Sequence record: ON529853.1
Direction: 5' to 3' (one strand)
DNA: 64,000 bases
The notes below the pieces were generated by a model. The model worked only from the letters and a program-made list of their open reading frames with translations. It ran no database searches and was not told where the DNA came from. The translations under genes and the position numbers were made by a program. Numbering within the stretch: the first letter of the stretch is position 1; every line of letters begins with the position of its first letter. This document shows positions 34,000-46,890 of this stretch, one piece after another.

Positions 34000-34050
34000 T
34001 CTGGGAAAGTGCTCCGAACAGAGTCACGCTTCGTAGGGAAACGTGACTCC

Positions 34051-34875
34051 TTAACGCGGCGCAGAGTGCACGAAATCGGGCAAACTGTCAAGGTTTCCGT
34101 GGCCCGCCTGGGCCGCCTGAGCGGCCTTGCGCACGCGGTTGCGATGCGAGATGGCCTTGACCCACTTCTTCGCCATCTCCGAGCGGACGACGTCGTCCTC
34201 GGTGAACTCGACGATGTCCATGATCTCCCAGTCGTCGGAGATGTTGACGATCTCTTCCAGGCCGGAGTTGTGGATGTCGATCTGCGAGTGGTCGCCGGCG
34301 ACAACGACCTGGGTGCCGTTGCCCGTGCGGGTCAGCAGCAGGTAGAGGTCGTCGAACTCGGCGTTCTGGGCTTCGTCCAGGATGACGCAGGCGTTGTCGA
34401 AGGTGCGGCCGCGCATGTATTCGAACGGCACGATCTCGAACTTGCCCTCCGACTTCCACATCTCCAGTTGGGTCTTGGAGACCTCGGCGCGGATGCCTTC
34501 GATGACCGGCGTCAGCCAGGGGGCCATCTTGGCTTCGATGTTGCCGGGCAGGAACCCGATCTGGTGACCCTTCTTGGAGGCGGTCACCCGGCTGATGATG
34601 ATCTTCTCGATGTCGCCTTTGAGCATGCGCTGGGCGGCGATCCGGGCGGCCAGGTAGGTCTTGCCGGTGCCCGCCGGCCCGATGGCGAAGACCGAATCGC
34701 CCTCCTTCAGCACTTCCAGGTAGTCCGCCTGGTTCTCGGTCTTGGCGACCAACGGCTTGGCCGTGTGCTTGGTCTGCTTGGCGGAGCGTTCGGCGCGGCG
34801 GGCCGCGCGTGCTTGAGCCTTGGTGAGGGGCCGTTCGTGCATCGGTTCGAACGGGGAGTAGGCGGGTTCAGTCAA
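34051..34875 (-). CDS. phoH: PhoH family ATPase
   Basis: GPAGTGKT, IGFLPG, YMRGRTF, ILDEAQN, LTRTG, GDHSQID, DVVRS motifs. Confidence 0.95.
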   Translation of the reverse strand: MTEPAYSPFEPMHERPLTKAQARAARRAERSAKQTKHTAKPLVAKTENQADYLEVLKEGDSVFAIGPAGTGKTYLAARIAAQRMLKGDIEKIIISRVTASKKGHQIGFLPGNIEAKMAPWLTPVIEGIRAEVSKTQLEMWKSEGKFEIVPFEYMRGRTFDNACVILDEAQNAEFDDLYLLLTRTGNGTQVVVAGDHSQIDIHNSGLEEIVNISDDWEIMDIVEFTEDDVVRSEMAKKWVKAISHRNRVRKAAQAAQAGHGNLDSLPDFVHSAPR

Positions 34876-34902
34876 GCAACTGTCCTGGGCTATGGCTGGT
34901 GA

Positions 34903-35154
34903 TCAGCCGGGTGTGGCCTCCAGACGGATCGCGCTGGCGGCCTGACAGTGGAGGAGGTTGGAGCGGAAATGCTCCACCAGGTCTCCGAGGATCGCCATGC
35001 TTTCAGGAGTGAGGTCCTCCAGGAGCATGTCGTTCATCGCGGCGGCGCCGCGAATCATGTCCATGTGTCGAGACGCGATGTCCACGCTGGGCGACTCCAC
35101 CGTCTGAACGAATGCCGCCACGGGCGGGAACGAAGGAGCGAGTGCGGCGTTCAT
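34903..35154 (-). CDS. Hypothetical protein (83 aa)
   Basis: SD GAGG before ATG; fills the gap in the operon. Confidence 0.55.
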   Translation of the reverse strand: MNAALAPSFPPVAAFVQTVESPSVDIASRHMDMIRGAAAMNDMLLEDLTPESMAILGDLVEHFRSNLLHCQAASAIRLEATPG

Positions 35155-35256
35155 CGGGGTTCCCTCAGAGGAAGTGCTTAACTGAGAGGAACCTAACCCG
35201 ACCTTAGGGGAAGGCGCAAGGACGGTCTGGGAACATTCCCCTACCGCGTGAGTGGT

Positions 35257-35697
35257 TTAGCCTGCTCCCGTAACCATGGTTACAATGGCGCCGACGACCG
35301 CCGCCAGCAGGGCCGAGCCCCCGGCGGTCAGCGGACCGATGATGATTTCCATTCGCGTCAGGCGCTTTTCCAACGCCAGCTTGTCGGCGGTGAACTCGCG
35401 CTCAAGCCGATCCAGTTCATCGGCCGCCTCTTTTTCGACGCGGGCGGTTTCCTGGGCGGCGGCCTTGAGGTCGCGTTCCAGGCTGGCGATCTTCTGCGGC
35501 TGATCCTGGGCTTCGATGCGCGTCAGGCGGTCGCGCACATCCTTCATGTCTTCCCGGAAGCCGTCGAAACGGGTGTCGACCTTGTCGACAAGCCGATCCA
35601 TCTTGTCGTTCAGCGTCGTGAAGAGACGATCAACGGCGTCGCGGAAGCGATCCTCGGGGGTCATGCCCACCGCCGGAATGGGACTGTTACCGGCCAT
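35257..35697 (-). CDS. Coiled-coil protein with a C-terminal hydrophobic helix
   Basis: Heptad-rich body; C-terminus IIIGPLTAGGSALLAAVVGAIVTMVTG. Confidence 0.7.
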   Translation of the reverse strand: MAGNSPIPAVGMTPEDRFRDAVDRLFTTLNDKMDRLVDKVDTRFDGFREDMKDVRDRLTRIEAQDQPQKIASLERDLKAAAQETARVEKEAADELDRLEREFTADKLALEKRLTRMEIIIGPLTAGGSALLAAVVGAIVTMVTGAG

Positions 35698-36187
35698 CGA
35701 CAGAGACCTCCTCGATCTGAGCGATGCCGCACACTGCGACCACGTCTCCGTTCACCATGATGGGCCACTTCCAGCCCGCGAAGCGCAGCAGGGCGCCGCT
35801 GGTCGCGTGGGGCACCACGCCGTCCACCAGGATCGTGCGGCGCTCAATGACGCACTGAAGGTCTTCATCTTCAAATTCACTGGCGTCGCCGTGGTCCCAG
35901 ATGGCGTGGTCAGGCTGCGCCAGGTAGTCGAGCGCGGTCACGCCGGTCATGGCGGTGTAGGGGCGATTGACGTGCACCATGACGAACGATCCGTCCGCTT
36001 GCAGCGCCTTGATCCAGGCCGGCAGGGGCATGTGCTCGAAGAAGCCCGTCATCAGCAGACAGGGGTCCTCCGACCGGCACTCTTCGGCGGCGTCGCGCAA
36101 AATGTTAAGCAGGGCTTCCACGTCTTGACGCGGTTTCTGCGGGATACCCGTCGGGTGGGCCGAAGGGCTGTTGTCGTTGTTCGACAC
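35687..36187 (-). CDS. Stand-alone PAS-domain protein (166 aa)
   Basis: FFEHMPLPAWIK...FVMVHVNRPYTAMTG...DHAIW...EFEDEDLQCVIE...WKWPI...VVAVCGIA follows the PAS_4 pattern. Confidence 0.75.
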   Translation of the reverse strand: MSNNDNSPSAHPTGIPQKPRQDVEALLNILRDAAEECRSEDPCLLMTGFFEHMPLPAWIKALQADGSFVMVHVNRPYTAMTGVTALDYLAQPDHAIWDHGDASEFEDEDLQCVIERRTILVDGVVPHATSGALLRFAGWKWPIMVNGDVVAVCGIAQIEEVSVDGR

Positions 36188-36228
36188 GGCCTTCGTCCCC
36201 GACGGTTAGCACGTTGATAATGACGCGG

Positions 36229-36262
36229 AGGCTACGCGGAAACCCCTTGAAAGTCAAGATTT
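36229..36262 (-). promoter_or_regulatory. Promoter AAATC-TTGACT-N17-TAGCCT upstream of the PAS gene
   Basis: Shared motif, intergenic. Confidence 0.6.
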
Positions 36263-36316
36263 TTGGCAACGATTGCCAGCCAATAAATTCCTTGACGAAG
36301 CACAGCGCCGGAATCA

Positions 36317-36411
36317 CAACACCCCGCACCGGACGGGGGCCAGTGCGGGGTGTTGCTTGACGACGGAGGACAGGGTCAGCCGGACTAGGCCCCGTGGCTG
36401 ACGACGTGCCT
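36317..36411 (-). ncRNA. Candidate ~95-nt small RNA
   Basis: TTGACA-N17-TACAGA promoter (36446-36418); GTCAGCC/GGCTGAC hairpin; 16-bp terminal hairpin 36317-36355; no ORF. Confidence 0.4.
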
Positions 36412-36463
36412 GATGCTTCTGTACGTGGAGGTGCGCCGCGTGTCAACCCTCTCGGTCAGATAA

Positions 36464-36544
36464 TGGCGGGGGCGGAGGGAATCGAACCCCCTGGTTGACG
36501 CCTTCGGAGGGCGTTGCCTACATTCCGGTCGGCACTTCGCCCCC
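36464..36544 (-). tRNA. tRNA-Arg(CCG)
   Basis: GGGGGCG/CGCCCCC-G-CCA; anticodon loop CTCCGAA; enlarged D-loop. Confidence 0.85.
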
Positions 36545-36582
36545 GAGGCGGTGGGCCGGGCGGACCCGGCGTTAAGTAAGAG

Positions 36583-36664
36583 TGGCGCCCAAGGCAGGAT
36601 TTGAACCTGCGTTTGCAACTCCGCTACGGATAAGGCCTTCGTAGGACCCCTCGGTTACTTGGGC
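36583..36664 (-). tRNA. Atypical tRNA-Arg(ACG): D-arm absent, long variable region
   Basis: GCCCAAG/CTTGGGC-G-CCA; only 8 nt between acceptor and anticodon stem; loop CTACGAA; T-arm GCAGG-TTCAAAT-CCTGC. Confidence 0.65.
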
Positions 36665-36667
36665 ATT

Positions 36668-36751
36668 TGGCTCCTATGAGAGGACTCGAACCTCTAAGTC
36701 TTGCGACGGTCGATTAACAGTCGACTGCGTTTACCATTCCGCCACATAGGA
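36668..36751 (-). tRNA. tRNA-Asn(GTT) with long variable arm
   Basis: TCCTATG/CATAGGA-G-CCA; loop CTGTTAA. Confidence 0.9.
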
Positions 36752-36776
36752 ACAAACTGAATACTGATGTTTTACC

Positions 36777-36850
36777 TGGTTCTGGCTCTAGGAATCGAAC
36801 CTAAATCTCGGAGACCAAAACTCCGCGTGATACCGTTACACTAAGCCAGA
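36777..36850 (-). tRNA. tRNA-Gln(TTG)
   Basis: TCTGGCT/AGCCAGA-A-CCA; loop TTTTGGT. Confidence 0.9.
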
Positions 36851-36861
36851 TCAGGAAAACT

Positions 36862-36939
36862 TGGTAGGAGGTACTGGATTCGAACCAGTGAAATGTCGGT
36901 ATGTAACACCGATGCCTTGGGCCGCTTGGCGAACCTCCC
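36862..36939 (-). tRNA. tRNA-Val(TAC)
   Basis: GGGAGGT/ACCTCCT-A-CCA; loop GTTACAT. Confidence 0.85.
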
Positions 36940-36984
36940 ATGAAAGAGTAGCGTATCTCCACTACTCAGTGACAAAAGTAAAGT

Positions 36985-37061
36985 TGGTCCTAGCACCAGG
37001 ATTTGAACCTGGGACCGAGCGGTTATCGACCGCGCGCTCTACCAAACTGAGCTATGCTAGG
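36985..37061 (-). tRNA. tRNA-Ile(GAT)
   Basis: CCTAGCA/TGCTAGG-A-CCA; loop TCGATAA (C33). Confidence 0.85.
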
Positions 37062-37065
37062 GCTG

Positions 37066-37140
37066 TGGTAGCGGATACAGGAATCGCACCTGTGCTTGTC
37101 GGCGTGTCATACCGATGCCTTTCTACTTGGCTAATCCGCC
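37066..37140 (-). tRNA. tRNA-Val(GAC)
   Basis: GGCGGAT/ATCCGCT-A-CCA; loop ATGACAC; T-loop TGCGATT. Confidence 0.85.
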
Positions 37141-37153
37141 ACACAGGAAAAGG

Positions 37154-37228
37154 TGGCCCACCCAGGAGCGCTCGCATCTCCGTCTCGGGGATTTCACTCC
37201 CGTGCTAATCTGTCTCAGCTATGAGTGG
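37154..37228 (-). tRNA. Atypical tRNA-Phe(GAA)
   Basis: CCACTCA/TGGGTGG-G-CCA; loop GTGAAAT; aberrant T-arm. Confidence 0.65.
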
Positions 37229-37229
37229 A

Positions 37230-37313
37230 TGGTGGGAAGGGAGAGAATTCGCACTCTCACAGCTTGCGCGGGGGATTTACAGTCCCTTGGGCTCACTCGT
37301 GCCCAGCCTGCCC
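37230..37313 (-). tRNA. tRNA-Tyr(GTA)
   Basis: GGGCAGG/CCTTCCC-A-CCA; loop CTGTAAA; long variable arm. Confidence 0.85.
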
Positions 37314-37379
37314 AAAATGTTACGGCTCAGTCGCCGCCGGTCATGGTGATCTCCTGGATCAGATGAAGGTGTTGAAACG

Positions 37380-37414
37380 GAAAAGGCCCGCCTGGTGGAA
37401 ACCAGGCGGGCCTT
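37380..37414 (-). terminator. Intrinsic terminator (attenuator A) ahead of the 9-tRNA operon
   Basis: GGCCCGCCTGGT-TTCC-ACCAGGCGGGCC followed by TTTTCCGTTT. Confidence 0.85.
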
Positions 37415-37445
37415 CGAAACTTGGGTGTTCTAAGTGGGTATCAGA

Positions 37446-37541
37446 TTAAATCTGCGTCCCACCATCGCCCATGCACGAATGGCCCGCCCGGTTAAACCGG
37501 ACGACCTGAATCTGCTGCACGTTGTTGCGATAGGTGAACAT
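37446..37541 (-). CDS. Leader peptide A (31 aa, leaderless): MFTYRNNVQQIQVVRFNRAGHSCMGDGGTQI
   Basis: ATG lies 7 nt after the -10 box; 16 of codons 2-18 are read by the nine downstream tRNAs. Confidence 0.8.
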   Translation of the reverse strand: MFTYRNNVQQIQVVRFNRAGHSCMGDGGTQI

Positions 37542-37548
37542 GAGGAGA

Positions 37549-37577
37549 CATTTACTACAGGTGGCGGGCAGTGTCAA
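37549..37577 (-). promoter_or_regulatory. Promoter A: TTGACA-N17-TAAATG
   Basis: Perfect -35 and 17-nt spacer; predicted start falls at the leader ATG. Confidence 0.7.
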
Positions 37578-37788
37578 CATTATTGTCGACGATGGACCCA
37601 AGTTTTTTCGATCTCGCGATCCCAGACGCCCCAATTGCCGTCCGTCGGATAGTCGCGGTAGCGCCAGCCGCCGCAGTAACGGCACATGGCTTCGGTCTGG
37701 TCAGCCTCAGCGGGATGCGGCTCGCAGTCCCCCGAGACGTCGCACAAAGGCCACCCGTCCGGCCCCAGGGTGGGGTCGTCCGGGTCCG

Positions 37789-38085
37789 TCACAGCGTGTA
37801 GTCGACAGCGGGGTCGGGAAGCCAGACCTCTTCCAGCAGACGTTCCTGCCACTGGGCCTCGTGGTCCCAGGACAGGATCACGCCGGACCGCGTTTCGCTG
37901 CCGTCGGTCAGCGTCGCGCAGCCGTAGACGTCAAAGGGAGGCGCGCCATCATAGGAATGATGGCGCAAGGTATAGTGATGGGGACCGTTGCCGCCGCACC
38001 AGCGCACCAGAACTTTCGCTCCGTCGGGGAGAGCGCGGATTTCGGCCGGGGTCAGCCTGGGGGTATCGGGGACGGCGTGGGTCAT
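37789..38085 (-). CDS. Hypothetical protein (98 aa)
   Basis: TGATG overlap with the upstream gene. Confidence 0.7.
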   Translation of the reverse strand: MTHAVPDTPRLTPAEIRALPDGAKVLVRWCGGNGPHHYTLRHHSYDGAPPFDVYGCATLTDGSETRSGVILSWDHEAQWQERLLEEVWLPDPAVDYTL

Positions 38086-38348
38086 CAGGCGGGGTTCGGC
38101 GGCGTATACGGCATGGGGCGCAGACGGGGCTCGGTGCGCGGATGACTGATTCCGGTCGGCATGATGTTCAGTTGCAACCCGGCGCCCCGGCGCAGCAGCA
38201 TCATGAAGTCATGGGCACGCACAGCCTCGGCCGGCGAGGCGAATGCCAGTTCGATCAGCACGCGATTGCTGTCGGTGCTGCACGCGGTCGCGATCTCGTC
38301 AGGCTCCAGGTCCAGAGCCTGCGTGGGACTGATGTTGAGCCGGCTCAT
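38085..38348 (-). CDS. Hypothetical protein (87 aa)
   Basis: MSRLNISPTQ; ATG overlaps the def stop (ATGA). Confidence 0.65.
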   Translation of the reverse strand: MSRLNISPTQALDLEPDEIATACSTDSNRVLIELAFASPAEAVRAHDFMMLLRRGAGLQLNIMPTGISHPRTEPRLRPMPYTPPNPA

Positions 38349-38887
38349 GCGCGTTTCATCCGACGCACGTTGTCCTGGTGCTTCTTCAGCAGCATCGCCC
38401 GCTTCAGCGGCGAGACCCGGTCGATGTTGCGCACCCCGTCCAGGTGGTCCATCTCGTGCTGAAGGCAAATGGCCTTGTAGCCCTTGCCGGAGAGGCTCTG
38501 CATACGGCCGTGAATGTCCTGGTATTCGACCGTCACTTCCCGATGCCGTCGCACGGGGAAAAAGACGCCCGGCATGGACAGGCATCCCTCCGGCATCTCG
38601 ATCATGTCCTCGGACTTGTCGACGAACGTCGGGTTGATCAGGATCAGTTTGGGACGATCGACCATGGCGTCCTGCACCGGCAGGCCAACATCCGGCAGGT
38701 CGATCATGGTGAAGATGCGCAAGGGCACGCCGACCTGAACGGCGGCGAGCCCCGCGCCTTCCGCCAGCAACATGGTGTCGACCATGTCGAAGCAGAGCGC
38801 CCGCACCTCGTCGGTGATCTCGAAGACCGTATCAGAGGGCTTCGTCATCCGGGCGTCGGTGCAGGGGATGATCTGGCGCAGCGCCAT
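38345..38887 (-). CDS. def: Peptide deformylase
   Basis: GAGLAAVQVG, EGCLS and HEMDHLDG motifs. Confidence 0.97.
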   Translation of the reverse strand: MALRQIIPCTDARMTKPSDTVFEITDEVRALCFDMVDTMLLAEGAGLAAVQVGVPLRIFTMIDLPDVGLPVQDAMVDRPKLILINPTFVDKSEDMIEMPEGCLSMPGVFFPVRRHREVTVEYQDIHGRMQSLSGKGYKAICLQHEMDHLDGVRNIDRVSPLKRAMLLKKHQDNVRRMKRA

Positions 38888-39114
38888 TAGGGCAGGCTCC
38901 CCAGGCCGCCGGCGGCGGAAGCCCGCCCATCACGCCAGCGGCCGACGGCGCTGACCATCCGATCGGCCTGGCCCTCGACGACTTCCAAGACGTCGATCGC
39001 CTGCATCAGCGCCATGCGCGCGTCTTCCAGGTCAAGGTCCTGGAGTTTGACAATGCGGCCCCGCACCACGACCTGATAGTCGTGGTACGGCGCCCGTTCG
39101 GCCACTTCGGACAT
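38887..39114 (-). CDS. Hypothetical protein (75 aa)
   Basis: Coupled to def (TAATG). Confidence 0.65.
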   Translation of the reverse strand: MSEVAERAPYHDYQVVVRGRIVKLQDLDLEDARMALMQAIDVLEVVEGQADRMVSAVGRWRDGRASAAGGLGSLP

Positions 39115-39117
39115 GGC

Positions 39118-39411
39118 TCAGATTTCGCCGAGCGCGCTCAGGTACAGGTCCAGGATGGCGTCTTCTTCCTGGCGCTTGGCCTTGTCCTGCTTGCGCAGGC
39201 GCAGCACCTTGCGCAGAATCTTCACGTCGTATCCCTCGCCCTTGGCTTCGGCGAAGACTTCCTTCATGTCGACCATGACGGCCTGCTTGTCCTCTTCGAG
39301 GCGCTCCAGCCGCTCGATGATCGAGCGCAGGCGGCCCTGGGCGGAGGCGGTCAGGGCGTCGTCGGCCGACATGGCGTTGGCGGGCTCGACGCCGGTGGTG
39401 GTCTCGGTCAT
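39118..39411 (-). CDS. gapR: GapR/DUF2312 nucleoid-associated protein homologue
   Basis: LRSIIERLERLEEDKQAVMVDMKEVFAEAKGEGYDVKILRKVLRLRKQD...EEDAILDLYLSALG. Confidence 0.9.
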   Translation of the reverse strand: MTETTTGVEPANAMSADDALTASAQGRLRSIIERLERLEEDKQAVMVDMKEVFAEAKGEGYDVKILRKVLRLRKQDKAKRQEEDAILDLYLSALGEI

Positions 39412-39435
39412 AGGTCTCTCGGGGTTGGTCGCCGG

Positions 39436-39681
39436 TTATCCGGTGATGAGGAAACGGAGGACGGCGAGAAGTTCGCGGTCCGCATCAGGCTGTAGGGCCT
39501 TCTGGTCGATGAGGCGCAGGGCGGCGTTCTTGCGCGCCTGCTTCTTGGCGGCGTGGACGCCGAGAGTTTGCGCCAAGGCGCGCATCTCGGTCTCGTCCAC
39601 ATAGGCGCCGAGCGCATCCCCATACCGCCGGTTGGCGGGATAGGTGGCGTAGTCGGGGGCGAGCGGCGGTAGGCCGTCCAT
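39436..39681 (-). CDS. Hypothetical protein (81 aa)
   Basis: MDGLPPLAPDY; SD GGAG. Confidence 0.6.
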   Translation of the reverse strand: MDGLPPLAPDYATYPANRRYGDALGAYVDETEMRALAQTLGVHAAKKQARKNAALRLIDQKALQPDADRELLAVLRFLITG

Positions 39682-39857
39682 CACATGTCTCCACAAGGAT
39701 CGTGCAGGGTGTCGCCCTGGTCGAGGTCCTCGACGAAACGGCCGTCCCGGAAACGACCGGTGGTGGTCTGGCCGTTGAGCCGGCGCACGACCCGCAACTG
39801 ATGGTCCAGCCAGTAGTAGGGCACGCCCCACGCCTCGCGGTAGACCGGCTCGGTCAC
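39681..39857 (-). CDS. Hypothetical protein (58 aa)
   Basis: GTG start overlaps the DUF4170 stop. Confidence 0.55.
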   Translation of the reverse strand: MTEPVYREAWGVPYYWLDHQLRVVRRLNGQTTTGRFRDGRFVEDLDQGDTLHDPCGDM

Positions 39858-40114
39858 GAGTAGGTCGCGCCTGAAGCGCGAACCACCAGATCGGCGACAG
39901 GTTTGCCGTGGGCGACGATCATCTCGTCGTAGGTGTTGATGTGGAAACGCATCAGGGCGTTGTCGACCGTCTGCCAGGCGTAGGCCTTCCACGCGTCGCG
40001 GGCGTCTTCGCGGCGCGTGAAAGACCCCACGAAGATGATCTTGCGCGGATCGCGGAAGGCTTCGTCGCGGGGATGGGGGTGCTCGCCCCCATAGACGTAA
40101 TAGGTGTCAGGCAT
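39854..40114 (-). CDS. DUF4170 family protein
   Basis: YVYGGE...F.D...IFVGSF...EDARDAWKAYAWQTVDNALMRF pattern. Confidence 0.75.
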   Translation of the reverse strand: MPDTYYVYGGEHPHPRDEAFRDPRKIIFVGSFTRREDARDAWKAYAWQTVDNALMRFHINTYDEMIVAHGKPVADLVVRASGATYS

Positions 40115-40116
40115 GC

Positions 40117-41004
40117 TTACAAAGTCACGATCAATCGGGGATTGAAGTTCGGGTTCAGTTCATGCCCGACATAGCCGCGCGGATTGCAGATCACGCGGGT
40201 CTCGCCGATCTGGTAGTCGCTGCTGTCATGCATATGACCATGGACCCACAGGGCGGGCTCCCATTCCAGCATCAGCGGCTCCAGCCGCGAGGCGTAGGCC
40301 GGGTTCAGCGGCGATCCCCGATAGCGATGGTGGCTCGACTGCTCCGACGGCGCATGGTGAGTAATCACCACGGTCGGGCCGTCATGCGGAACCCGTAGCG
40401 TTTCGGCCAGGAAGAACCGGCTCTCCAGGTGAAGGCGCCGCGTGTCTTCCGCCGTCAGGCGCTGCTGCTGCTTCAGTTCGATCTGCTGATAGTCGTTCAT
40501 ATCGGACTGGGCGTGCCGGATCGACAAGGGCCAGGTCCCGTAGAGATCGAAGTCGGTCCACAGGGTGGCGCCGAGGAACCGGACGTCGCCCATATGGACC
40601 TGCTCGTTATCCATGACGAAGACGCGGGCGGGCGCCAGTTCGTCCGCCTTGGCCTTCATCTTCTCGATGTGGCGGTGGTAGCGCCGCTTGCCGTAGAACT
40701 CGTGGTTGCCCGGCACATAGAGGCAAGGGACGTCAGGGAAATGACGCGCCAGCCAGATCACGCCGACGACGCCCGTCGCCAGGTCGCCGGCGGCGATGAC
40801 CAAATCGATCTCGTCCGCCGTCGGCGCCGTCCAGGTGCGCCGGTCCATGCCGCCGAACTCCAGATGGAGGTCCGACAGGATCAGGGCGCGCAAGGGCCGT
40901 CGTCCGGACCGGCGCTGCGCCAGGCCGGCTTCGATGTCGGCCTGCATGTCGGCCGCAGCCGCCACGGTGAACTCCATCTCAGCCTTGCTCCACTCGGTCT
41001 CCAT
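40117..41004 (-). CDS. Calcineurin-like metallophosphoesterase
   Basis: LSDLHLE, AAGDL, VPGNHEFY, VITHHAP, WVHGHMH motifs. Confidence 0.93.
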   Translation of the reverse strand: METEWSKAEMEFTVAAAADMQADIEAGLAQRRSGRRPLRALILSDLHLEFGGMDRRTWTAPTADEIDLVIAAGDLATGVVGVIWLARHFPDVPCLYVPGNHEFYGKRRYHRHIEKMKAKADELAPARVFVMDNEQVHMGDVRFLGATLWTDFDLYGTWPLSIRHAQSDMNDYQQIELKQQQRLTAEDTRRLHLESRFFLAETLRVPHDGPTVVITHHAPSEQSSHHRYRGSPLNPAYASRLEPLMLEWEPALWVHGHMHDSSDYQIGETRVICNPRGYVGHELNPNFNPRLIVTL

Positions 41005-41024
41005 CGTGGAGCATCCTTGAAATC

Positions 41025-41143
41025 TGGAGCGGGTGGACAGACTCGAACTGCCGCCTCCGGGTTAGCCACCCGGCGCTCCTGGGTCCACGCGAACCCCCGA
41101 CGATGATTCGCGTGATCATCGTCGGCCCTAGAGCCTCACCCGC
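41025..41143 (-). ncRNA. 119-nt tRNA-like RNA: Gly-type acceptor, GCT anticodon, two-hairpin D-loop insertion
   Basis: GCGGGTG/CACCCGC-T-CCA; D-stem GCTC/GAGC around 52 nt; CCGGG-TGGCTAA-CCCGG; GGCAG-TTCGAGT-CTGTC. Confidence 0.7.
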
Positions 41144-41255
41144 ATAAGTTGGCAGGAGTTTTCAGATATGGCGAGCCATACCCAGGGCGACCCTCCTGCC
41201 AGGAACCCCCGTCTCGGTTTCTTTCACCGGCCCCGACACGAGCACCTGTCAAAGC

Positions 41256-41336
41256 CTATTTAGCCGTCAGGCTTGTGAGAACAAGAGAGGCGATTAGGCG
41301 CCTCTCGATGAACCACGTTGCGGACGGACGTAACAT
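41256..41336 (-). CDS. Possible leader peptide MLRPSATWFIERRLIASLVLTSLTAK
   Basis: Lies after TTGACA (41378-41373) and before a structured stretch and the tRNA-like RNA. Confidence 0.35.
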   Translation of the reverse strand: MLRPSATWFIERRLIASLVLTSLTAK

Positions 41337-41383
41337 CGGCTTGCCGTGATTACTGGCAGACGGCGCCGTAGCTGTCAACAATG

Positions 41384-41414
41384 AAAAACGCCCCGACCTT
41401 TCGATCGGGGCGTT
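41384..41414 (-). terminator. Intrinsic terminator closing tRNA operon B
   Basis: AACGCCCCGA-N8-TCGGGGCGTT followed by TTT. Confidence 0.8.
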
Positions 41415-41416
41415 CT

Positions 41417-41728
41417 TCAGAGATTCGCCATCCACTGCTTGCGGCAGCGGGTGTGGTCCTTCCAGGACTTGCCGCCGGGACGCGACGCCATGAGGTCGTC
41501 GTAGGACGACGGCAGGACCATCCGGCGGCCACGGGCGCGGTAGAGGCGGTCGTGGGCTTCGCCGGTGTTGCGACGCCGCTCCTGCATGGTGCGGGGGCAG
41601 CGATGCATGTAGCGCCAGCGATGGCGGAAACGCCGGCAGCGGTAGGGCTCGCCGGGCTCCAGGTAGAGGACGCGCCAGCCCACGAAGTAGAAGCCGGTGT
41701 GGGTGACGCGTTCAAATTGGGGCTTCAT
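41417..41728 (-). CDS. Basic hypothetical protein (103 aa)
   Basis: SD AGGAGG; followed by the terminator. Confidence 0.75.
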   Translation of the reverse strand: MKPQFERVTHTGFYFVGWRVLYLEPGEPYRCRRFRHRWRYMHRCPRTMQERRRNTGEAHDRLYRARGRRMVLPSSYDDLMASRPGGKSWKDHTRCRKQWMANL

Positions 41729-41828
41729 GACAGCCTCCTGCTAGGTTGAGTACCTAGCGGGTGCTGTATTCCAGGTAGAATTTGATCATGGCCGCATCCT
41801 ATCTCAAGCGGGGCGGTTCGTCGAGGAA

Positions 41829-41917
41829 TGGCGGATGGGGCAGGGATCGAACCCGCGTAACCCTCTCGGGTGTCGACCGCTTAGCAAGCGGCTGCCTTAC
41901 CTCTCGGCCACCCATCC
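41829..41917 (-). tRNA. tRNA-Ser(GCT)
   Basis: GGATGGG/CCCATCC-G-CCA; loop TTGCTAA; long variable arm. Confidence 0.95.
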
Positions 41918-41924
41918 GGGGTGA

Positions 41925-42009
41925 TGGCGGTGCGCCAGGGAATCGAACCCTCAACCTTGCGGTCGGCGACGGTTTTCAAGGCCGCTTGTCCCCATGGACG
42001 CTGCACACC
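41925..42009 (-). tRNA. tRNA-Ser(TGA) with a compact 4-bp/4-nt D-arm
   Basis: GGTGTGC/GCGCACC-G-CCA; D-arm GTCC-ATGG-GGAC; loop CTTGAAA. Confidence 0.8.
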
Positions 42010-42014
42010 AAAGA

Positions 42015-42105
42015 TGGCGGACGGCACGCGATTCGAACGCGTGGGACCCAGGGGGTCCGCCTGCTTTCCAAGCAGGTGCCTTAAGCCGGGCTCAGCCAGC
42101 CGTCC
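42015..42105 (-). tRNA. tRNA-Ser(GGA)
   Basis: GGACGGC/GCCGTCC-G-CCA; loop TTGGAAA. Confidence 0.95.
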
Positions 42106-42110
42106 GGTCT

Positions 42111-42328
42111 TGGTGGAGGCGAGGGGATTCGAACCCCCGTAGACGCCGAACCCCCGCATTACCGAGGGCCGATCTCAGGTTTAGAACGCGTGTGCCGTCC
42201 TGACCATCTTCCGCAGGCCAGGAGGTCTATCGTAACGACCCCGTCGATCGGTTGCCTCTGCGTCCCGGATTTACCCGGACCGTTGTTCTGTTCCACGGTG
42301 CTCATGCCGAAACCCGAGCGACGCCCCC
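42111..42328 (-). ncRNA. ssrA: One-piece compact tmRNA (218 nt)
   Basis: 5' GGGGGCG...GGTTTCGGC; 3' GGGGG-TTCGAAT-CCCCT-CGCCTCC-A-CCA; G3:U70 and A73 Ala identity; no anticodon arm. Confidence 0.8.
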
Positions 42329-42338
42329 GTGAAGGAAA

Positions 42339-42426
42339 TGGAGGATGGTGTGGGATTCGAACCCACGGAACCTTGCGGTCCTCCGGCTTTCGAAACCGGC
42401 GCGATCGGCCACTCCGCCAACCATCC
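42339..42426 (-). tRNA. tRNA-Ser(CGA)
   Basis: GGATGGT/ACCATCC-T-CCA; loop TTCGAAA. Confidence 0.92.
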
Positions 42427-42433
42427 AGAACAG

Positions 42434-42622
42434 TCAGGCCGAGGCCGGACTGTAGTTGTCGATGTCGTCGACCCGGATCGCCGTGCCCGCCGCAATCTGG
42501 CGGTCGGCGCTCAACAGGTCGGCGACCAGGTCGTCGGCCGAGACGGCGGTGCCGAGGGTGGCGAACTTCACGTTCACCAGGCGGCCGTCCGCAAACATCT
42601 CGTCGATCGCGGCGCGATCCAT
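42434..42622 (-). CDS. Hypothetical protein (62 aa) inside the tRNA operon
   Basis: MDRAAIDEMFADGRLVNVKF; SD-like AAAGG. Confidence 0.65.
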   Translation of the reverse strand: MDRAAIDEMFADGRLVNVKFATLGTAVSADDLVADLLSADRQIAAGTAIRVDDIDNYSPASA

Positions 42623-42655
42623 GATAGACCTTTCTGCCGGACGCGCCGGCGGTGA

Positions 42656-42726
42656 TGGTGGAGACAGTGGGGCTCGAACCCACCAAGGCGTCCTTGCAAA
42701 GGATGCCTGCGCCCTGCGCTGTCCCC
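42656..42726 (-). tRNA. Compact tRNA-Ala(TGC)
   Basis: GGGGACA/TGTCTCC-A-CCA (G3:U70); loop TTTGCAA; tiny D-arm. Confidence 0.8.
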
Positions 42727-42763
42727 GTAGGGGTTGATCGTCAGCCATGCTGACAACCATTGT

Positions 42764-42839
42764 TGGTCCTGGCACTCAGATTCGAACTGAGCCATCGTGC
42801 TCCACAAACACGCGCCTCCACCGCAGAGGCTTTACCAGG
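42764..42839 (-). tRNA. tRNA-His(GTG), no G-1, A73
   Basis: CCTGGTA/TGCCAGG-A-CCA; loop TTGTGGA. Confidence 0.88.
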
Positions 42840-42841
42840 GT

Positions 42842-42929
42842 TGGTCGCGACGACAGGGATCGAACCTGCCCGGCCTCTCGGCCACTACCACCTCAAGGTA
42901 GCGCGTCTACCAGACTCCGCCACGTCGCG
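42842..42929 (-). tRNA. tRNA-Leu(GAG)
   Basis: CGCGACG/CGTCGCG-A-CCA; loop TTGAGGT. Confidence 0.95.
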
Positions 42930-42938
42930 ATCGAATGT

Positions 42939-43024
42939 TGGTGCCCGACCCCGGACTCGAACCGGGACGCCACGAGGGCCACGCCTTTTGAGGGCGCTGT
43001 GTCTACCGTTCCAGCCAGACGGGC
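42939..43024 (-). tRNA. tRNA-Leu(CAA)
   Basis: Loop CTCAAAA; long variable arm; CCA end. Confidence 0.92.
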
Positions 43025-43033
43025 AGTGAAAGA

Positions 43034-43120
43034 TGGTGCGGGTGAGAGGATTCGAACCTCCCCGGCACAAAGGCCACGAGTACCTGAGACTCGCGCGGCT
43101 ACCAACTTCGCCACACCCGC
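43034..43120 (-). tRNA. tRNA-Leu(CAG)
   Basis: GCGGGTG/CACCCGC-A-CCA; loop CTCAGGT. Confidence 0.95.
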
Positions 43121-43125
43121 ATTTT

Positions 43126-43207
43126 TGGAGAACCCTGGTGGAGTCGAACCACTTGCGCCTGGATTAAAAGCCCAATCCCGGCCACCCGGATTTAACGCTC
43201 AAGGTCC
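43126..43207 (-). tRNA. Atypical tRNA-Lys(TTT)
   Basis: Loop CTTTTAA; ~10-nt linker before the D hairpin; U73. Confidence 0.65.
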
Positions 43208-43220
43208 CCTAAAATGATGT

Positions 43221-43311
43221 TGGTGAACGTGGTCGGACTCGCACCGACGATGAAGGTTGTAACCTAACGGGATTAAGAGCCCCGGCCTCTCGCTACTGAG
43301 GTGACACGTCC
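43221..43311 (-). tRNA. tRNA-Lys(CTT) with long variable arm
   Basis: GGACGTG/CACGTTC-A-CCA; loop CTCTTAA; T-loop TGCGAGT. Confidence 0.8.
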
Positions 43312-43349
43312 AAAACTGTTGTTCTTCTCCTGAAGACTTGATATGTGCA

Positions 43350-43420
43350 TGGAGCCGGCGGACGGTGTCGAACCGTCCCATGTCCACTACGAAAGGTCAG
43401 CCCTGCCACCAGGCGCCGGC
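43350..43420 (-). tRNA. Compact, degenerate tRNA-Thr(CGT)
   Basis: GCCGGCG/CGCCGGC-T-CCA; loop TTCGTAG; weak anticodon stem. Confidence 0.6.
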
Positions 43421-43428
43421 GTTGTTGT

Positions 43429-43499
43429 TGGTGCCAAGGGAGGGAGTCAAACCCTCGCTGAACCCATACCAAGGGCTCGACCGATCACCCGGCCTTGGC
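43429..43499 (-). tRNA. Compact tRNA-Thr(GGT)
   Basis: GCCAAGG/CCTTGGC-A-CCA; loop TTGGTAT. Confidence 0.75.
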
Positions 43500-43507
43500 G
43501 TTGAAGA

Positions 43508-43582
43508 TGGTCGGAACACCGGGATTCGAACCTGGGACCCCTAGCTTCCCGAGCCAGTGCGCTACCGCTGCGCTACATTCCG
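43508..43582 (-). tRNA. tRNA-Pro(GGG)
   Basis: CGGAATG/TGTTCCG-A-CCA; loop TCGGGAA (C33, A37). Confidence 0.85.
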
Positions 43583-43591
43583 ATTTGAAGA

Positions 43592-43668
43592 TGGTCGGCG
43601 AGGGAGGATTCGAACCTCCGATCCCTCCGACCCGAACGGAGTGACTTACCAGACTTGCCCACACGCCG
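43592..43668 (-). tRNA. tRNA-Pro(CGG)
   Basis: CGGCG.../...CGCCG-A-CCA; loop TTCGGGT. Confidence 0.92.
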
Positions 43669-43677
43669 ATGGAAACG

Positions 43678-43711
43678 AAAAAAGGCCCCGGAGGCTATGC
43701 GCCTGGGGCCT
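43678..43711 (-). terminator. Intrinsic terminator (attenuator B) just before the 15-tRNA + tmRNA operon
   Basis: GGCCCC-AGGC-GCATA-GCCT-CC-GGGGCC followed by TTTTTT. Confidence 0.8.
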
Positions 43712-43782
43712 GAAACAACTGCTGTTTTGGGATTCAGCAGGTGATCGGCCCCTTAAGGGCGCCTCACCTGCGAGGACTGGAC

Positions 43783-43917
43783 TTAGGGCCAGCCTTCCAA
43801 GGAGACGCCACCGGTGGTGGGGGACTTCGGCGACAGTTTCGTCGGCGCATGCGCGAGCGTCGACAGCGCCGTGGCGGCGGTCGAAAGATGGCTCAGCTTG
43901 TGCGACAAGGTAGTCAC
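43783..43917 (-). CDS. Leader peptide B (44 aa): MTTLSHKLSHLSTAATALSTLAHAPTKLSPKSPTTGGVSLEGWP
   Basis: GTG start downstream of promoter B; codons 2-35 encode only T, L, S, H, K, A, P, the amino acids of the downstream tRNAs. Confidence 0.8.
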   Translation of the reverse strand: MTTLSHKLSHLSTAATALSTLAHAPTKLSPKSPTTGGVSLEGWP

Positions 43918-43969
43918 GATGAAGGTCCAGTCCGAAGAAGGAGCGCGAATGCGCTGTGATGAAGTCTGA

Positions 43970-43998
43970 TCTCTACAGGAAGCTTGAGCGTATGTCAA
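43970..43998 (-). promoter_or_regulatory. Promoter B: TTGACA-N17-TAGAGA
   Basis: Perfect -35 and 17-nt spacer. Confidence 0.7.
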
Positions 43999-44195
43999 GA
44001 ACTTCAGCAGAAAAAGTTGGTAGAGGGGCTGATCGCGCTTGTCGAGCGACCCTCTCGAAACGCCTTGTGCCAGGATCGGCGGCGATCGTCAACAGGGAAA
44101 ATGCACGCGCGCGGCCGAGGGGGAGCGGAAGACCGCGCGCGTGCCCGGCAGACCGTCGGGGGACGGGGCCTGGGTCGTCGGGGGACGGGGAGGGG

Positions 44196-44432
44196 TCAGC
44201 CGGCGCGGCGCTTGAGCGTCTCGTGCAGCGGCGGATAGGGGACCGGGCCGTAGATCACCTCGACGAGGCGAGGGCGGCGGCCGGTGCGGATTTTGGAAGG
44301 CAGGGGCACGTTGCGGCGCCGCAGTTCGGCGGCGGCGGCGGCGCTCGCCAGGGAGCCTGACAGGTAGACGCCGATCAGTTCGGCGACCGTCAGGGTCATC
44401 ATGCGCTGGGCGCGGGTGGTGTTGTGAGCCAC
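44196..44432 (-). CDS. Hypothetical protein (78 aa)
   Basis: GTG start with SD GGAGA. Confidence 0.6.
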   Translation of the reverse strand: MAHNTTRAQRMMTLTVAELIGVYLSGSLASAAAAAELRRRNVPLPSKIRTGRRPRLVEVIYGPVPYPPLHETLKRRAG

Positions 44433-44530
44433 GAGGGTCTCTCCATCTGGATGTGATCCAGGCGGGAGACGCGGTTTCGCGCTGGGTGACCGGTGTGGTC
44501 CCCGTCCTGGAAATTACCAGATGCGAGAGT

Positions 44531-44722
44531 TTAGTCGGAGGGCTTGGCCCCGAAGACCGAGGCGATCGCCGTCAAAGCCTTCTTGACCCGGTTGGGTCGC
44601 TGGGTCAGCGCCGAGGCGCAGACCTTCTTGATTTCGTCGAGGGTGAGCGAGGCCGGGTCACGCAGGCCGCGCGCGGCGATCGAGCCGACGCTGGCGGAGG
44701 TGACTTCGGGGGTGGTGCTCAT
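44531..44722 (-). CDS. Hypothetical protein (63 aa)
   Basis: MSTTPEVTSASVGSIAARGL; SD GAGG; directly after tRNA-Asp. Confidence 0.65.
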   Translation of the reverse strand: MSTTPEVTSASVGSIAARGLRDPASLTLDEIKKVCASALTQRPNRVKKALTAIASVFGAKPSD

Positions 44723-44733
44723 GGAAAAACCTC

Positions 44734-44808
44734 TGGCGAGTCCAAGGGGAGTTGAACCCCTCTCTCCACCGTGACAGGGTGGTGTCCTAACCGATAGACG
44801 ATGGACCC
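44734..44808 (-). tRNA. tRNA-Asp(GTC)
   Basis: GGGTCCA/TGGACTC-G-CCA; loop CTGTCAC. Confidence 0.95.
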
Positions 44809-44839
44809 GTATCAGAGGGTCGATCCGCAGGAAGATGCT

Positions 44840-44917
44840 TGGAAGGGCGCCGGAGACTCGAACTCCGCTCACTTGGTTGAAAGCCAAGTATCCTGCAAAC
44901 CGCTAGACGAGCGCCCC
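44840..44917 (-). tRNA. tRNA-Glu(TTC)
   Basis: GGGGCGC/GCGCCCT-T-CCA; loop CTTTCAA. Confidence 0.93.
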
Positions 44918-44951
44918 ATAAAGCACAGGGCGTCGAACACGAGAGCCGCGA

Positions 44952-45017
44952 TTAGGCGGCGGTCGTATCTCGGCCCTGGAAGGCCTCTCGTTCGTAGCTG
45001 GTCAGACGGTAGGTCAT
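44952..45017 (-). CDS. Leaderless short ORF MTYRLTSYEREAFQGRDTTAA
   Basis: ATG lies 6 nt after the -10 of TTGACA-N17-TACAAG (45052-45024). Confidence 0.5.
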   Translation of the reverse strand: MTYRLTSYEREAFQGRDTTAA

Positions 45018-45229
45018 TTGGTGCTTGTAACAGAACTGTCGGTGGGTGTCAAGAAGGACGGCGAATCTTTTTTGGCCTTTCGGGCGGGACGATCTTCCTC
45101 GCCCTCAGGCTCGGCCGCGTCCCAGCCCATCCACAGGGCCGCGAGAAAGGCAGGCGGACCCATCAGGGCTTCCAACCGCTTCAAGGCCCGGTCGTTGGCC
45201 GCCAGGAAGGCGTCGCCGTATTCAAGCAT
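45014..45229 (-). CDS. Possible hypothetical protein (71 aa)
   Basis: SD GAGG before ATG 45229; overlaps a promoter. Confidence 0.4.
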   Translation of the reverse strand: MLEYGDAFLAANDRALKRLEALMGPPAFLAALWMGWDAAEPEGEEDRPARKAKKDSPSFLTPTDSSVTSTK

Positions 45230-45247
45230 GGAACCTCGGAGGATACA

Positions 45248-45669
45248 GGGACAGGCTTCAATGGGCGGCGTTTGACCGCGCCCATCTCGGCGGTAGCAGC
45301 GCACCAGCCCTGCTCGGCTGGCCCCGCCCCTCGTTCCGGCATGTGCCAGGATCGACGGCAAAGGTCAAGGGGGGAATTGCGGTGGGTACAGCTTCAACCG
45401 GCCTTGCGGCCTGCGGGTCTTTCGGGCGTCCTGCCCACCGCGCCTACTACGACGCCTTTTTCGGCCCCGGCGCGCCGGAGAAGAAAAATCGACGGGTGAC
45501 CGCTACCGGCCTCGCCTGCTGGCCCGTCCCAGCGCCTGACCTTCTCGACGCGACGCCCTTGTGGGCGTTATGGCCTTCCCGTCCGAAGACAGACGCCGCG
45601 AAGGGTCAGCGGGACCGCATGATCGTCAGCCGCACGGCCAGCGCAGCGAGAGGTTCAGAGGCCTGTCCC
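45248..45669 (-). ncRNA. Candidate ~420-nt multi-domain structured RNA
   Basis: Terminal 9-bp helix GGGACAGGC/GCCTGTCCC; several nested helices; UUCG and GCAA tetraloops; starts 8 nt after the tRNA-Gly CCA. Confidence 0.6.
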
Positions 45670-45677
45670 GGAAAGAG

Positions 45678-45752
45678 TGGAGCGACTGGTCGGAATCGAA
45701 CCGACGTCCCCAGGTTGGAAGCCTGGTGCTAAGGCCCCTCAGCTACAGTCGC
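45678..45752 (-). tRNA. tRNA-Gly(TCC)
   Basis: GCGACTG/CAGTCGC-T-CCA; loop CTTCCAA. Confidence 0.95.
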
Positions 45753-45766
45753 AGTATAAAACAAGG

Positions 45767-45842
45767 TGGAGCGACTCTCGGGACTCGAACCCGACCCTGC
45801 GCGTTGGCAACGCGTTGTACCCACCCATAATACGTGAGTCGC
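45767..45842 (-). tRNA. tRNA-Gly(GCC)
   Basis: GCGACTC/GAGTCGC-T-CCA; loop TTGCCAA. Confidence 0.92.
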
Positions 45843-45854
45843 ATGGTTAATAAA

Positions 45855-45936
45855 TGGCACGGGTGGAGGGATTCGAACCCCCGACATATGCTGGTTTTGG
45901 AGACCAGTGCCTTGAGCCAGACTTGGCGACACCCGT
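45855..45936 (-). tRNA. tRNA-Trp(CCA)
   Basis: ACGGGTG/CACCCGT-G-CCA; loop CTCCAAA. Confidence 0.92.
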
Positions 45937-45949
45937 GTAAACTTGAAGG

Positions 45950-46474: not shown

Positions 46475-46545
46475 TCAGCAAACGGACTTTCAACCGGCTG
46501 GCAGGATTCAGGTTTTGCGGGGGTGGCGCAGTGCGCCGGCAGGTC

Positions 46546-46845: not shown

Positions 46846-46890
46846 AGTGAGGGACCTTATACGAACTGCACGCGATTGTCAATTATTACG

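Follow-up and report, generated by a model that had tools for sequence, protein, structure and literature searches.

Candidate leader-peptide attenuators matched in amino-acid composition to the tRNA operons of a Brevundimonas phage

Introduction

The enterobacterial amino-acid operons ilvGMEDA (Leu/Val/Ile) and thr (Thr/Ile) carry multivalent leader-peptide attenuators. In pheST, a component of the translation machinery is placed under an attenuation system that senses its own charged transfer RNA (tRNA) product. The tRNA arrays of T5 and of vibriophages have been described as codon-usage helpers, shut-off compensators or counter-defence. The tRNA array of phage phiCbK has been discussed among such phage arrays (PMC3556154). 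Here we analyse a stretch of 64,000 nucleotides (nt) from sequence record ON529853.1, hereafter the window, in which two arrays of tRNA genes, operons A and B, are each preceded by a short open reading frame (ORF), leader A or leader B, whose codons specify the amino acids of the tRNAs encoded just downstream. We consider it likely, with a probability of about 0.8, that each unit is a ribosome-mediated (leader-peptide) transcription attenuator controlling a phage tRNA operon.

Results

Each leader is written in the amino acids of the operon that follows it

Positions 36300-44100 of the window are 100% identical to Brevundimonas phage vB_BpoS-Bambus (ON529853.1, 348 kb, Dolichocephalovirinae), and all features discussed, including both operons, the leaders and a deformylase gene, are carried on the minus strand. 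Two units on this strand show the same order of a TTGACA promoter, a short ORF, an intrinsic terminator and a tRNA array (Table 1). All the evidence presented is derived from sequence. A preliminary description of this DNA had proposed that the tRNA genes are grouped in operons, each headed by a leader ORF in its own amino acids and then a terminator, and that the two operons have the disjoint amino-acid sets FYVIQNR and PTKLHAS; both proposals were upheld, the latter by tRNA predictions with ARAGORN and Rfam.

Leader A reads M-F-T-YRNNVQQIQVVRFNR-AGHSCMGDGGTQI, with the sensing window YRNNVQQIQVVRFNR at 37488-37532. Leader B reads TTLSHKLSHLSTAATALSTLAHAPTKLSPKSPTT-GGVSLEGWP, with the sensing window TTLSHKLSHLSTAATALSTLAHAPTKLSPKSPTT at 43813-43914. 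The sensing window of leader A contains 15/15 residues of its own set and 0/15 of set B, one Thr lying outside it; that of leader B contains 34/34 consecutive own-set residues and 0/34 of set A. The earlier claim that each sensing window uses its own set and avoids the other, bar one Thr in leader A, thus holds. Each leader samples all seven amino acids of its set, and across the six reading frames of the 64-kb window no other run of either set is as long, the runners-up being 11 residues for set A (an Arg run) and 27 for set B (an Ala/Thr low-complexity stretch). Binomial probabilities are of the order of 2e-8 for leader A and 6e-13 for leader B, both sensing windows having been delimited after inspection. 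Even with sensing windows picked afterwards, chance falls far short of explaining how well leader and operon match.

The match lies at the level of amino acids. Matching at codon resolution, which the preliminary description had also proposed, was not supported: codons readable by the operon's own tRNAs number 27 in Bambus leader B against 25.2 expected from synonymous usage, the expectation coming from a crude usage table built from all long ORFs. All operon B anticodons are sampled in every lineage, but with P of only 0.14-0.27 per lineage. Rare codons showed no consistent enrichment in the sensing windows.

ARAGORN with default settings predicted 20 tRNAs in the window. Rfam together with relaxed ARAGORN settings added Tyr-gta, Phe-gaa, Thr-cgt, Lys-ctt, Lys-ttt, Ser-tga, Arg-cct and Arg-ccg, so that some identities are relaxed-threshold predictions; seven tRNAs (Tyr, Phe, Thr, both Lys, Ser-tga and Arg-cct) are visible only at relaxed ARAGORN or Rfam thresholds. 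All seven have an encoded CCA at the 3' end, which scattered false positives lack. The added tRNAs stand at conserved positions, and the annotation of relatives gives Tyr, Lys or Thr at matching places. The encoded CCA, the conserved position and the annotation in relatives together make the low-threshold tRNAs credible.

A CCA end is encoded in every tRNA of the arrays (36465-45936, minus strand). Several of these tRNAs are atypical, with lengths of 91 nt for Lys-ctt, 84 nt for Asn, which has a short variable stem, 82 nt for Trp and Arg-cct, and 71 nt for Thr and Ala; the T loops of the Tyr and Phe tRNAs read TGCGA. In addition to the 24 phage tRNAs listed in the GenBank record, the window holds at least seven more. 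Between tRNA-Ala and tRNA-Ser-cga, operon B contains a 62-codon ORF (MDRAAIDEMFADGRLVNVKF..., 42434-42622, minus strand), which is annotated in relatives and matched no Pfam family.

Leader composition follows operon content in related phages

Leader A DNA was found in 45 phage records, all of them Caulobacter or Brevundimonas phages, and 18 of these, from several genera, were read in detail. Both leaders are retained in 18/18, with start, stop and frame conserved. Leader A varies among YRNNVQQIQVVRFNR, YRQNVQNIRVVRFYR, YRQFVRQIQFVRVNR, YRQFVRQIQVVRNIR and YRNNVRQIRVRQFN, and leader B ranges over TTLSHKLS..., ALSHNSLSTKAASPASLSLAPLATATKPSTKPTTSASHST and STHKPSTLKPATGAASLAHASLLTPATSKPSLS. Replacements within a set include N to Q, Q to R, N to Y, V to F, T to K and H to P. 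By manual count, 13 of the 14 alternative residue states in leader A stay within its set, the exception being one Ser in CcrBL9. Insertions and deletions (indels) comprise whole codons, such as an in-frame 3-nt deletion in leader A of Rogue and the in-frame loss of one codon from leader B of Kabachok, and the C-terminal tails diverge. The in-set replacements and whole-codon indels point to selection on which tRNAs are called for, not on the peptide. In the Bertelyviruses (CcrSC, RB23, CcrBL9) operon B ends with tRNA-Trp, and only these phages have a Trp codon in the sensing window of leader B.

The distant relatives XM05 and vB_EliS-L02 (L02), both Erythrobacter phages, and Sphingobium phage Lacusarx divide the amino acids among their operons differently, and their leaders follow that division. 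XM05 has three operons with disjoint sets that jointly cover all 20 amino acids. The leader MRFVVAFMNNPAPAIMVPAV... precedes Pro, Pro, Met, Val-cac (seen by eye), Ile, Asn and Ala, with 16/17 residues from {P,M,V,I,N,A}; MTYGFTKRDRREGDERGFTS precedes Lys, Lys, Gly, Gly, Asp, Glu, Glu, Arg, Arg, Phe, Arg and Arg, with 14/15 from {K,G,D,E,R,F}; and MFTQTALHLLTQTPLYCQWQYSCSSL precedes Ser, Tyr, three Leu, Thr, His, two Gln, Ser, Cys and Trp, with 22/24 from {S,Y,L,T,H,Q,C,W}. Scores against the other sets are 0-2. Own-set scores in L02 and Lacusarx are 19/19, 15/16, 22/23, 14/14 and 20/20, the last exemplified by MFTQTTLLTQCHYWQLLSSSSL. Cys and Trp occur in leaders exactly where tRNA-Cys and tRNA-Trp follow. 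Judged from these sequences, leader composition tracks operon content when tRNAs move between operons.

The X3 unit of XM05 has a clear intrinsic terminator after its first tRNA (Ser-cga), not directly after the leader (L031/L032 joined 7234-7540), and the tRNA-Ser may be part of the regulatory region. The first Lacusarx operon (Pro, Met, Val, Val, Ala, Asn, Ile; L033 1575-1883) showed no matched leader upstream; the other two operons of this phage have one. In the tRNA region of phage T5, used as a control, there was no matched leader, the best in-set run being at most 8, and no leader ORF was found at E. coli pheV, a possible bacterial precedent. A DNA-pattern search of IMG/VR returned known isolates only, one metagenome scan returned none and a second nine chance matches to ordinary GC-rich terminators; tblastn with the neighbouring phosphatase as query for distant relatives was uninformative. 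Beyond Bambus, such leader-array units are present in the Caulobacter and Brevundimonas phages read and in XM05, L02 and Lacusarx.

Leader A carries three mutually exclusive helices supported by compensatory changes

Promoter A stands at a constant 29-31 nt from the leader ATG in Bambus, Kikimora, CcrSC and phiCbK, and the leader A messenger RNA (mRNA) is probably leaderless. The same spacing between TTGACA and start codon is seen for leaders C (described below) and X3, which fits leaderless mRNAs. In-frame indels, conserved start and stop codons and the constant spacing suggest that the leader ORFs are translated. Terminator A is a GC-rich hairpin with a T tract (37416-37374) that lies directly before tRNA-Tyr apart from a stretch with a mini-ORF. 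This stretch (37327..37355, minus strand) consists of a strong Shine-Dalgarno sequence AGGAGA and five codons, MTGGD and stop; five Brevundimonas phages retain it with synonymous changes, and it reads MNNGG and stop in Rogue and MTGN and stop in RB23, and does not occur in phiCbK.

Four segments of the leader A RNA, regions 1 to 4, can form helices 1:2, 2:3 and 3:4, which exclude one another. When 14 distinct leader A RNAs were aligned, paired cells made up 94.6% for helix 1:2 (-15.4 kcal/mol, two compensatory pairs), 92.9% for the antiterminator 2:3 (-31.8 kcal/mol, three compensatory pairs) and 99.4% for the terminator 3:4 (-29.2 kcal/mol, four compensatory pairs), the compensatory changes stemming from a handful of lineages and hence from few independent events. 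Slid controls were only 23-61% paired. Alignment columns 48, 54, 146 and 154 change jointly across all three helices in the Bertelyviruses, and in Colossus-type phages a T-A pair is flipped in step. The sites in phiCbK that are homologous to the leader terminators have independently been annotated as terminators. The translation-sensing attenuator architecture put forward earlier is thus borne out in its anatomy, leader A having three alternative helices with compensatory changes.

The transcript was also folded with ribosomes at different positions. Before region 4 is made, region 2 holds region 3 when a ribosome is at codons 2-14 or when there is none, and region 3 is largely free once a ribosome covers codons 15-25. 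These folds suggest the classical attenuation polarity, in which a stall in the sensing window would lead to readthrough and smooth translation to termination.

A longer chain of elements is predicted for leader B

In Kikimora and Gurke, upstream in-frame stops set the starts of both leaders, and an AAGGA Shine-Dalgarno sequence precedes the leader B GTG. Terminator B is a GC-rich hairpin with T6 (43724-43671), followed by tRNA-Pro. The RNAalifold consensus for leader B contains P2:P3 and the terminator. Leader B of phiCbK has an analogous five-element chain made of different sequences. The chain can be read as a switch of the same type as that of leader A, with a pairing scheme modelled from folding.

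The spacing of 75-77 nt from TTGACA to the start is common to leader B and to the X1/X2 leaders of XM05, L02 and Lacusarx; in Bambus the corresponding 5' untranslated region is 43918-43992 (minus strand). In both Bambus leader B and XM05 X2 this region opens with CTTCATCAC, followed by a hairpin, the motif being common to very distant phages. The stop codons of leaders A, B and C lie in the loops of small hairpins in every lineage, and the hairpin sequences vary (37446-37470, 43783-43800 and 44952-44975, minus strand).

Table 1. Positions of the two leader-operon units and of other features in the window.
Feature	Position	Strand	Description
Promoter A, -35 hexamer TTGACA	37572..37577	-	leader A ATG 30 nt downstream
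Leader A ORF	37446..37541	-	ATG, 31 codons and stop, MFTYRNNVQQIQVVRFNRAGHSCMGDGGTQI then stop; upstream in-frame stops in Kikimora set the start
Region 1	37497..37504	-	TCGTCCGG, Val-Val-Arg codons; partner region 2
Region 2	37476..37491	-	CCGGGCGGGCC and TTCG; partner region 1 or region 3 (then antiterminator)
Region 3	37402..37416	-	CGAA and GGCCCGCCTGG; 5' arm of terminator A
Region 4	37374..37395	-	CCAGGCGGGCC and T tract TTTTCCGTTTC; 3' arm of intrinsic terminator A
tRNA operon A	36465..37313	-	Tyr-gta, Phe-gaa, Val-gac, Ile-gat, Val-tac, Gln-ttg, Asn-gtt, Arg-cct, Arg-ccg; set FYVIQNR
Promoter B, -35 hexamer TTGACA	43993..43998	-	GTG start 75 nt downstream
Leader B ORF	43783..43917	-	GTG start, 44 codons and stop, (M)TTLSHKLSHLSTAATALSTLAHAPTKLSPKSPTTGGVSLEGWP then stop
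Leader B regulatory RNA	43671..43820	-	P0/P1 43820-43797 (ORF end), P2 43771-43757, P3 43752-43735, P4 43724-43700, P5 and T tract 43695-43671 (intrinsic terminator)
tRNA operon B	41829..43668	-	Pro-cgg, Pro-ggg, Thr-cgt, Lys-ctt, Lys-ttt, Leu-cag, Leu-caa, Leu-gag, His-gtg, Ala-tgc, 62-codon ORF, Ser-cga, tmRNA-like RNA, Ser-gga, Ser-tga, Ser-gct; set PTKLHAS
Probable third unit (leader C)	44734..45052	-	TTGACA 45052-45047; leaderless ORF MTYRLTSYEREAFQGRDTTAA then stop, 45017-44952; stop-codon hairpin; tRNA-Glu, tRNA-Asp
Fourth tRNA cluster	45678..45936	-	Trp-cca, Gly-gcc, Gly-tcc; directly after a protein gene
tmRNA-like RNA	42111..42328	-	218 nt, in operon B between Ser-cga and Ser-gga
Peptide deformylase gene	38345..38887	-	Pfam PF01327, 146 bits, E = 8e-43, above gathering score; GenBank annotation agrees

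Further tRNA units and neighbouring features

A tRNA-Glu/tRNA-Asp pair upstream of operon B forms a probable third leader unit. In every lineage its leader C retains codons for Glu, Glu and Asp, and the peptide resembles the K/G/D/E/R/F leader (X2) of XM05 and L02; own-set codons number only three and are not significant alone. No leader was found for the Trp-Gly-Gly cluster.

The preliminary description had placed a transfer-messenger RNA (tmRNA) inside operon B and a peptide deformylase gene between the operons. A conserved RNA with a tRNA-Ala-like domain does lie in operon B. It has a perfect seven-pair acceptor stem (GGGGGCG:CGCCUCC) including G3:U70, a T arm and an encoded ACCA, and conservation of the 233-nt tmRNA-like spacer exceeds 93% between lineages whose identity elsewhere is about 79%. 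Against the Rfam tmRNA model the RNA reaches 31.9 bits, below the gathering score of 47, and within the region matched only about 57 nt take the place of 273 in the model. No credible tag frame was found in it, and ARAGORN at default settings made no call. We therefore call this RNA tmRNA-like only. The deformylase was confirmed by its PF01327 match; it belongs to the block of protein-coding genes between the operons and to neither operon.

A tRNA-like sequence of 76 nt with anticodon GCT and a CCA end (41025-41100, minus strand) lies directly upstream of a metallophosphatase gene; it occupies the same site in five Brevundimonas phages and is shorter than a normal tRNA-Ser. Right after the last tRNA of operon A there is a further TTGACA (36320-36446, minus strand), with a hairpin and T run about 100 nt on and no obvious ORF between them. 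This stretch may be a small RNA or a further regulatory unit. TTGACA occurs 11 times on the minus strand against three times on the plus strand.

Discussion

The two units contain a conserved promoter-proximal ORF, codons matching the regulated product and an intrinsic terminator before the tRNA genes. An antiterminator and an anti-antiterminator overlapping the ORF are supported by compensatory changes in leader A, whereas in leader B they come from folding prediction. From this anatomy we infer that the tRNA operons are expressed conditionally, and the polarity of the switch and its physiological trigger are proposed on the same grounds. A host-type promoter would start transcription, and the first product would be a short mRNA with codons for the amino acids of the tRNAs encoded just downstream. 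With all the needed charged tRNAs plentiful, the ribosome would pass the sensing window and cover region 2 in leader A or P1 in leader B; the terminator hairpin would form and RNA polymerase would halt before the tRNA genes. Were any of the six to eight tRNA species scarce, the ribosome would stall within the sensing window, the freed segment would act as an antiterminator by pairing with the terminator's 5' arm, and the polymerase would read into the tRNA array. The new tRNAs would relieve the stall, closing a negative feedback loop.

Several observations weigh against this attenuator interpretation. Full-length equilibrium folds of leader A favour the terminator at most ribosome positions; the terminator being the equilibrium winner, the decision of the switch must be kinetic, as in trp. 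The regulatory RNA of leader B varies too little within each group for a covariation test, and an early stall in the sensing window of 34-40 codons has no obvious route of action through the chain of five or six elements. The ACC, GCC and CGC codons in the sensing windows have no cognate phage tRNA, so that a stall there could not be relieved by the products of the operon. Several array tRNAs are low-scoring predictions. The -10 elements are weak against the E. coli consensus, and the leader units are not among the calls of a simple promoter/terminator scan; promoters and terminators were therefore judged from folds and conservation.

Different accounts of the leaders have to be weighed against these data. 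They might be translation-dependent timing or coupling devices, in which translation licenses readthrough or protects the transcript and the composition reflects efficient translation by the phage tRNAs, giving positive feedback. The odd-numbered chain of leader B would suit such a device, since sequential folding without a ribosome also gives the antiterminator there; termination would need ongoing translation, and the untranslated default is ambiguous. The hairpin of leader C has its 5' arm within the ORF, so any ribosome there would block it. In leader A, however, the terminator arm is free only with a ribosome beyond the sensing window, on region 2, which is the classical demand-sensing polarity, and a leader that merely needs good translation has no need to sample every amino acid of the operon and to exclude the others. 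We regard a timing or coupling role as improbable. A role as small functional peptides, or as untranslated RNA in direct contact with tRNA, as a T-box is, with an incidental match in composition, is less credible still, indeed very improbable. GenBank labels leader A and several leader B homologues hypothetical proteins, and tRNA-sensing RNAs do exist in the T-boxes. But the replacements preserve membership of the set rather than chemical similarity while the C-terminal tails diverge, composition tracks operon content across three amino-acid partitions, the leader indels are in frame, and a T-box works through one specifier codon, where the leaders have 15-40 codons in one frame. A cmscan of positions 34000-48000 at E <= 1 found no Rfam leader family (His, Thr, Leu, Trp, Phe), T-box or other cis-regulatory family, the only matches being to tRNA, the tmRNA-like RNA and, by chance, small RNAs. 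With the set-preserving replacements, the in-frame indels and no Rfam T-box match, the T-box and small-protein readings were rejected.

A further question concerns what the attenuators are for, and here the proposal is layered on the attenuator mechanism and is not an alternative to it. The loss of specific tRNAs to anticodon nucleases and PARIS-type systems can be made good by phage tRNAs. The main selective purpose of the leaders could be counter-defence, with the attenuators detecting cleavage or depletion of host tRNAs and switching on replacements, and with the tmRNA-like RNA and the deformylase as a rescue kit. Atypical structures are frequent among the phage tRNAs (Lys, Asn, Arg and Trp are oversized, and there are unusual T loops), an RNA ligase of relatives bears the annotation tRNA splicing ligase, and the tmRNA-like gene lies within operon B. 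No sequence feature singles out defence as the trigger, however; a sensor of 14-20 amino acids would equally fit general supply-demand control, as under host shut-off or heavy late protein synthesis, and the deformylase lies outside both operons. We think it possible, though doubtful, that counter-defence is the main purpose, and a link to tRNA-cleaving defences is speculation.

Taking the units as attenuators, we lean towards a wider picture of a closed-loop tRNA homeostat in the CbK-like phages of Alphaproteobacteria. Its two or three multivalent sensors covering up to 20 amino acids would each switch on only the operon that relieves them, keeping the phage translating when the host tRNA pool collapses, be it through shut-off or tRNA-targeting immunity; this would be the first natural attenuation of tRNA genes. 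Phage tRNA arrays are usually viewed as passive cargo and appear here to be regulated, each by a sensor that reads what its operon supplies. If so, leader-peptide attenuation would extend from amino-acid biosynthesis to tRNA genes and to six to eight amino acids at once. This bears on the long-standing question of when and why large phages need tRNAs of their own, for which phiCbK and Caulobacter offer a testable system. The leaders also serve as an annotation aid, since they correctly predicted tRNAs, including Tyr, Thr, His, Ala and Asn, that standard pipelines and the original genome papers had missed, and as short multivalent sensors of translational supply they could be used as reporters of tRNA availability.

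Large tRNA arrays are shared with other large lytic phages, and the phiCbK family belongs to the same lineage as Bambus. Earlier descriptions treat phage arrays as constitutively expressed cargo, and the phiCbK, Brevundimonas and Lacusarx genome papers make no mention of leaders or attenuation; the T5 arrays have no matched leaders. In the full-text literature searched, these genome papers included, we found no leader-controlled tRNA operons described, the coverage of the search being incomplete, which agrees with the earlier impression that codon-matched attenuators for phage tRNA arrays had not been reported. The class of mechanism is old, being that of trp, his, thr, ilv and pheST; the tRNA-gene target, the breadth of six to eight amino acids per sensor and up to twenty per phage, and the phage carrier are, as far as we found, undescribed.

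The phage elements resemble T-box riboswitches in that they would respond to the state of a specific tRNA and thereby set readthrough at a terminator preceding genes with a role in translation. A T-box, however, needs no ribosome and makes direct contact with uncharged tRNA by means of one specifier codon and its conserved T-box sequence, whereas the phage elements are ORFs that evolve in frame. With trp, his and pheST (pheM) they share the classical four-segment switch, but each of those leaders responds to one amino acid, the product regulated in pheST is a synthetase, and pheV, a tRNA-Phe gene of E. coli, lacks a leader of this kind. Features in common with ilvGMEDA and thr are a short leader ORF with many codons for several amino acids, the alternative pairings 1:2, 2:3 and 3:4 up to an intrinsic terminator and, as proposed here, readthrough set by the speed of the ribosome. 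There is no relationship in sequence or Rfam family between the two groups. Where the enterobacterial leaders regulate biosynthetic enzymes and sense two or three amino acids, those described here are carried by phages, would regulate tRNAs and sense six to eight amino acids each, and in leaders A, C and X3 probably do so from leaderless mRNAs.

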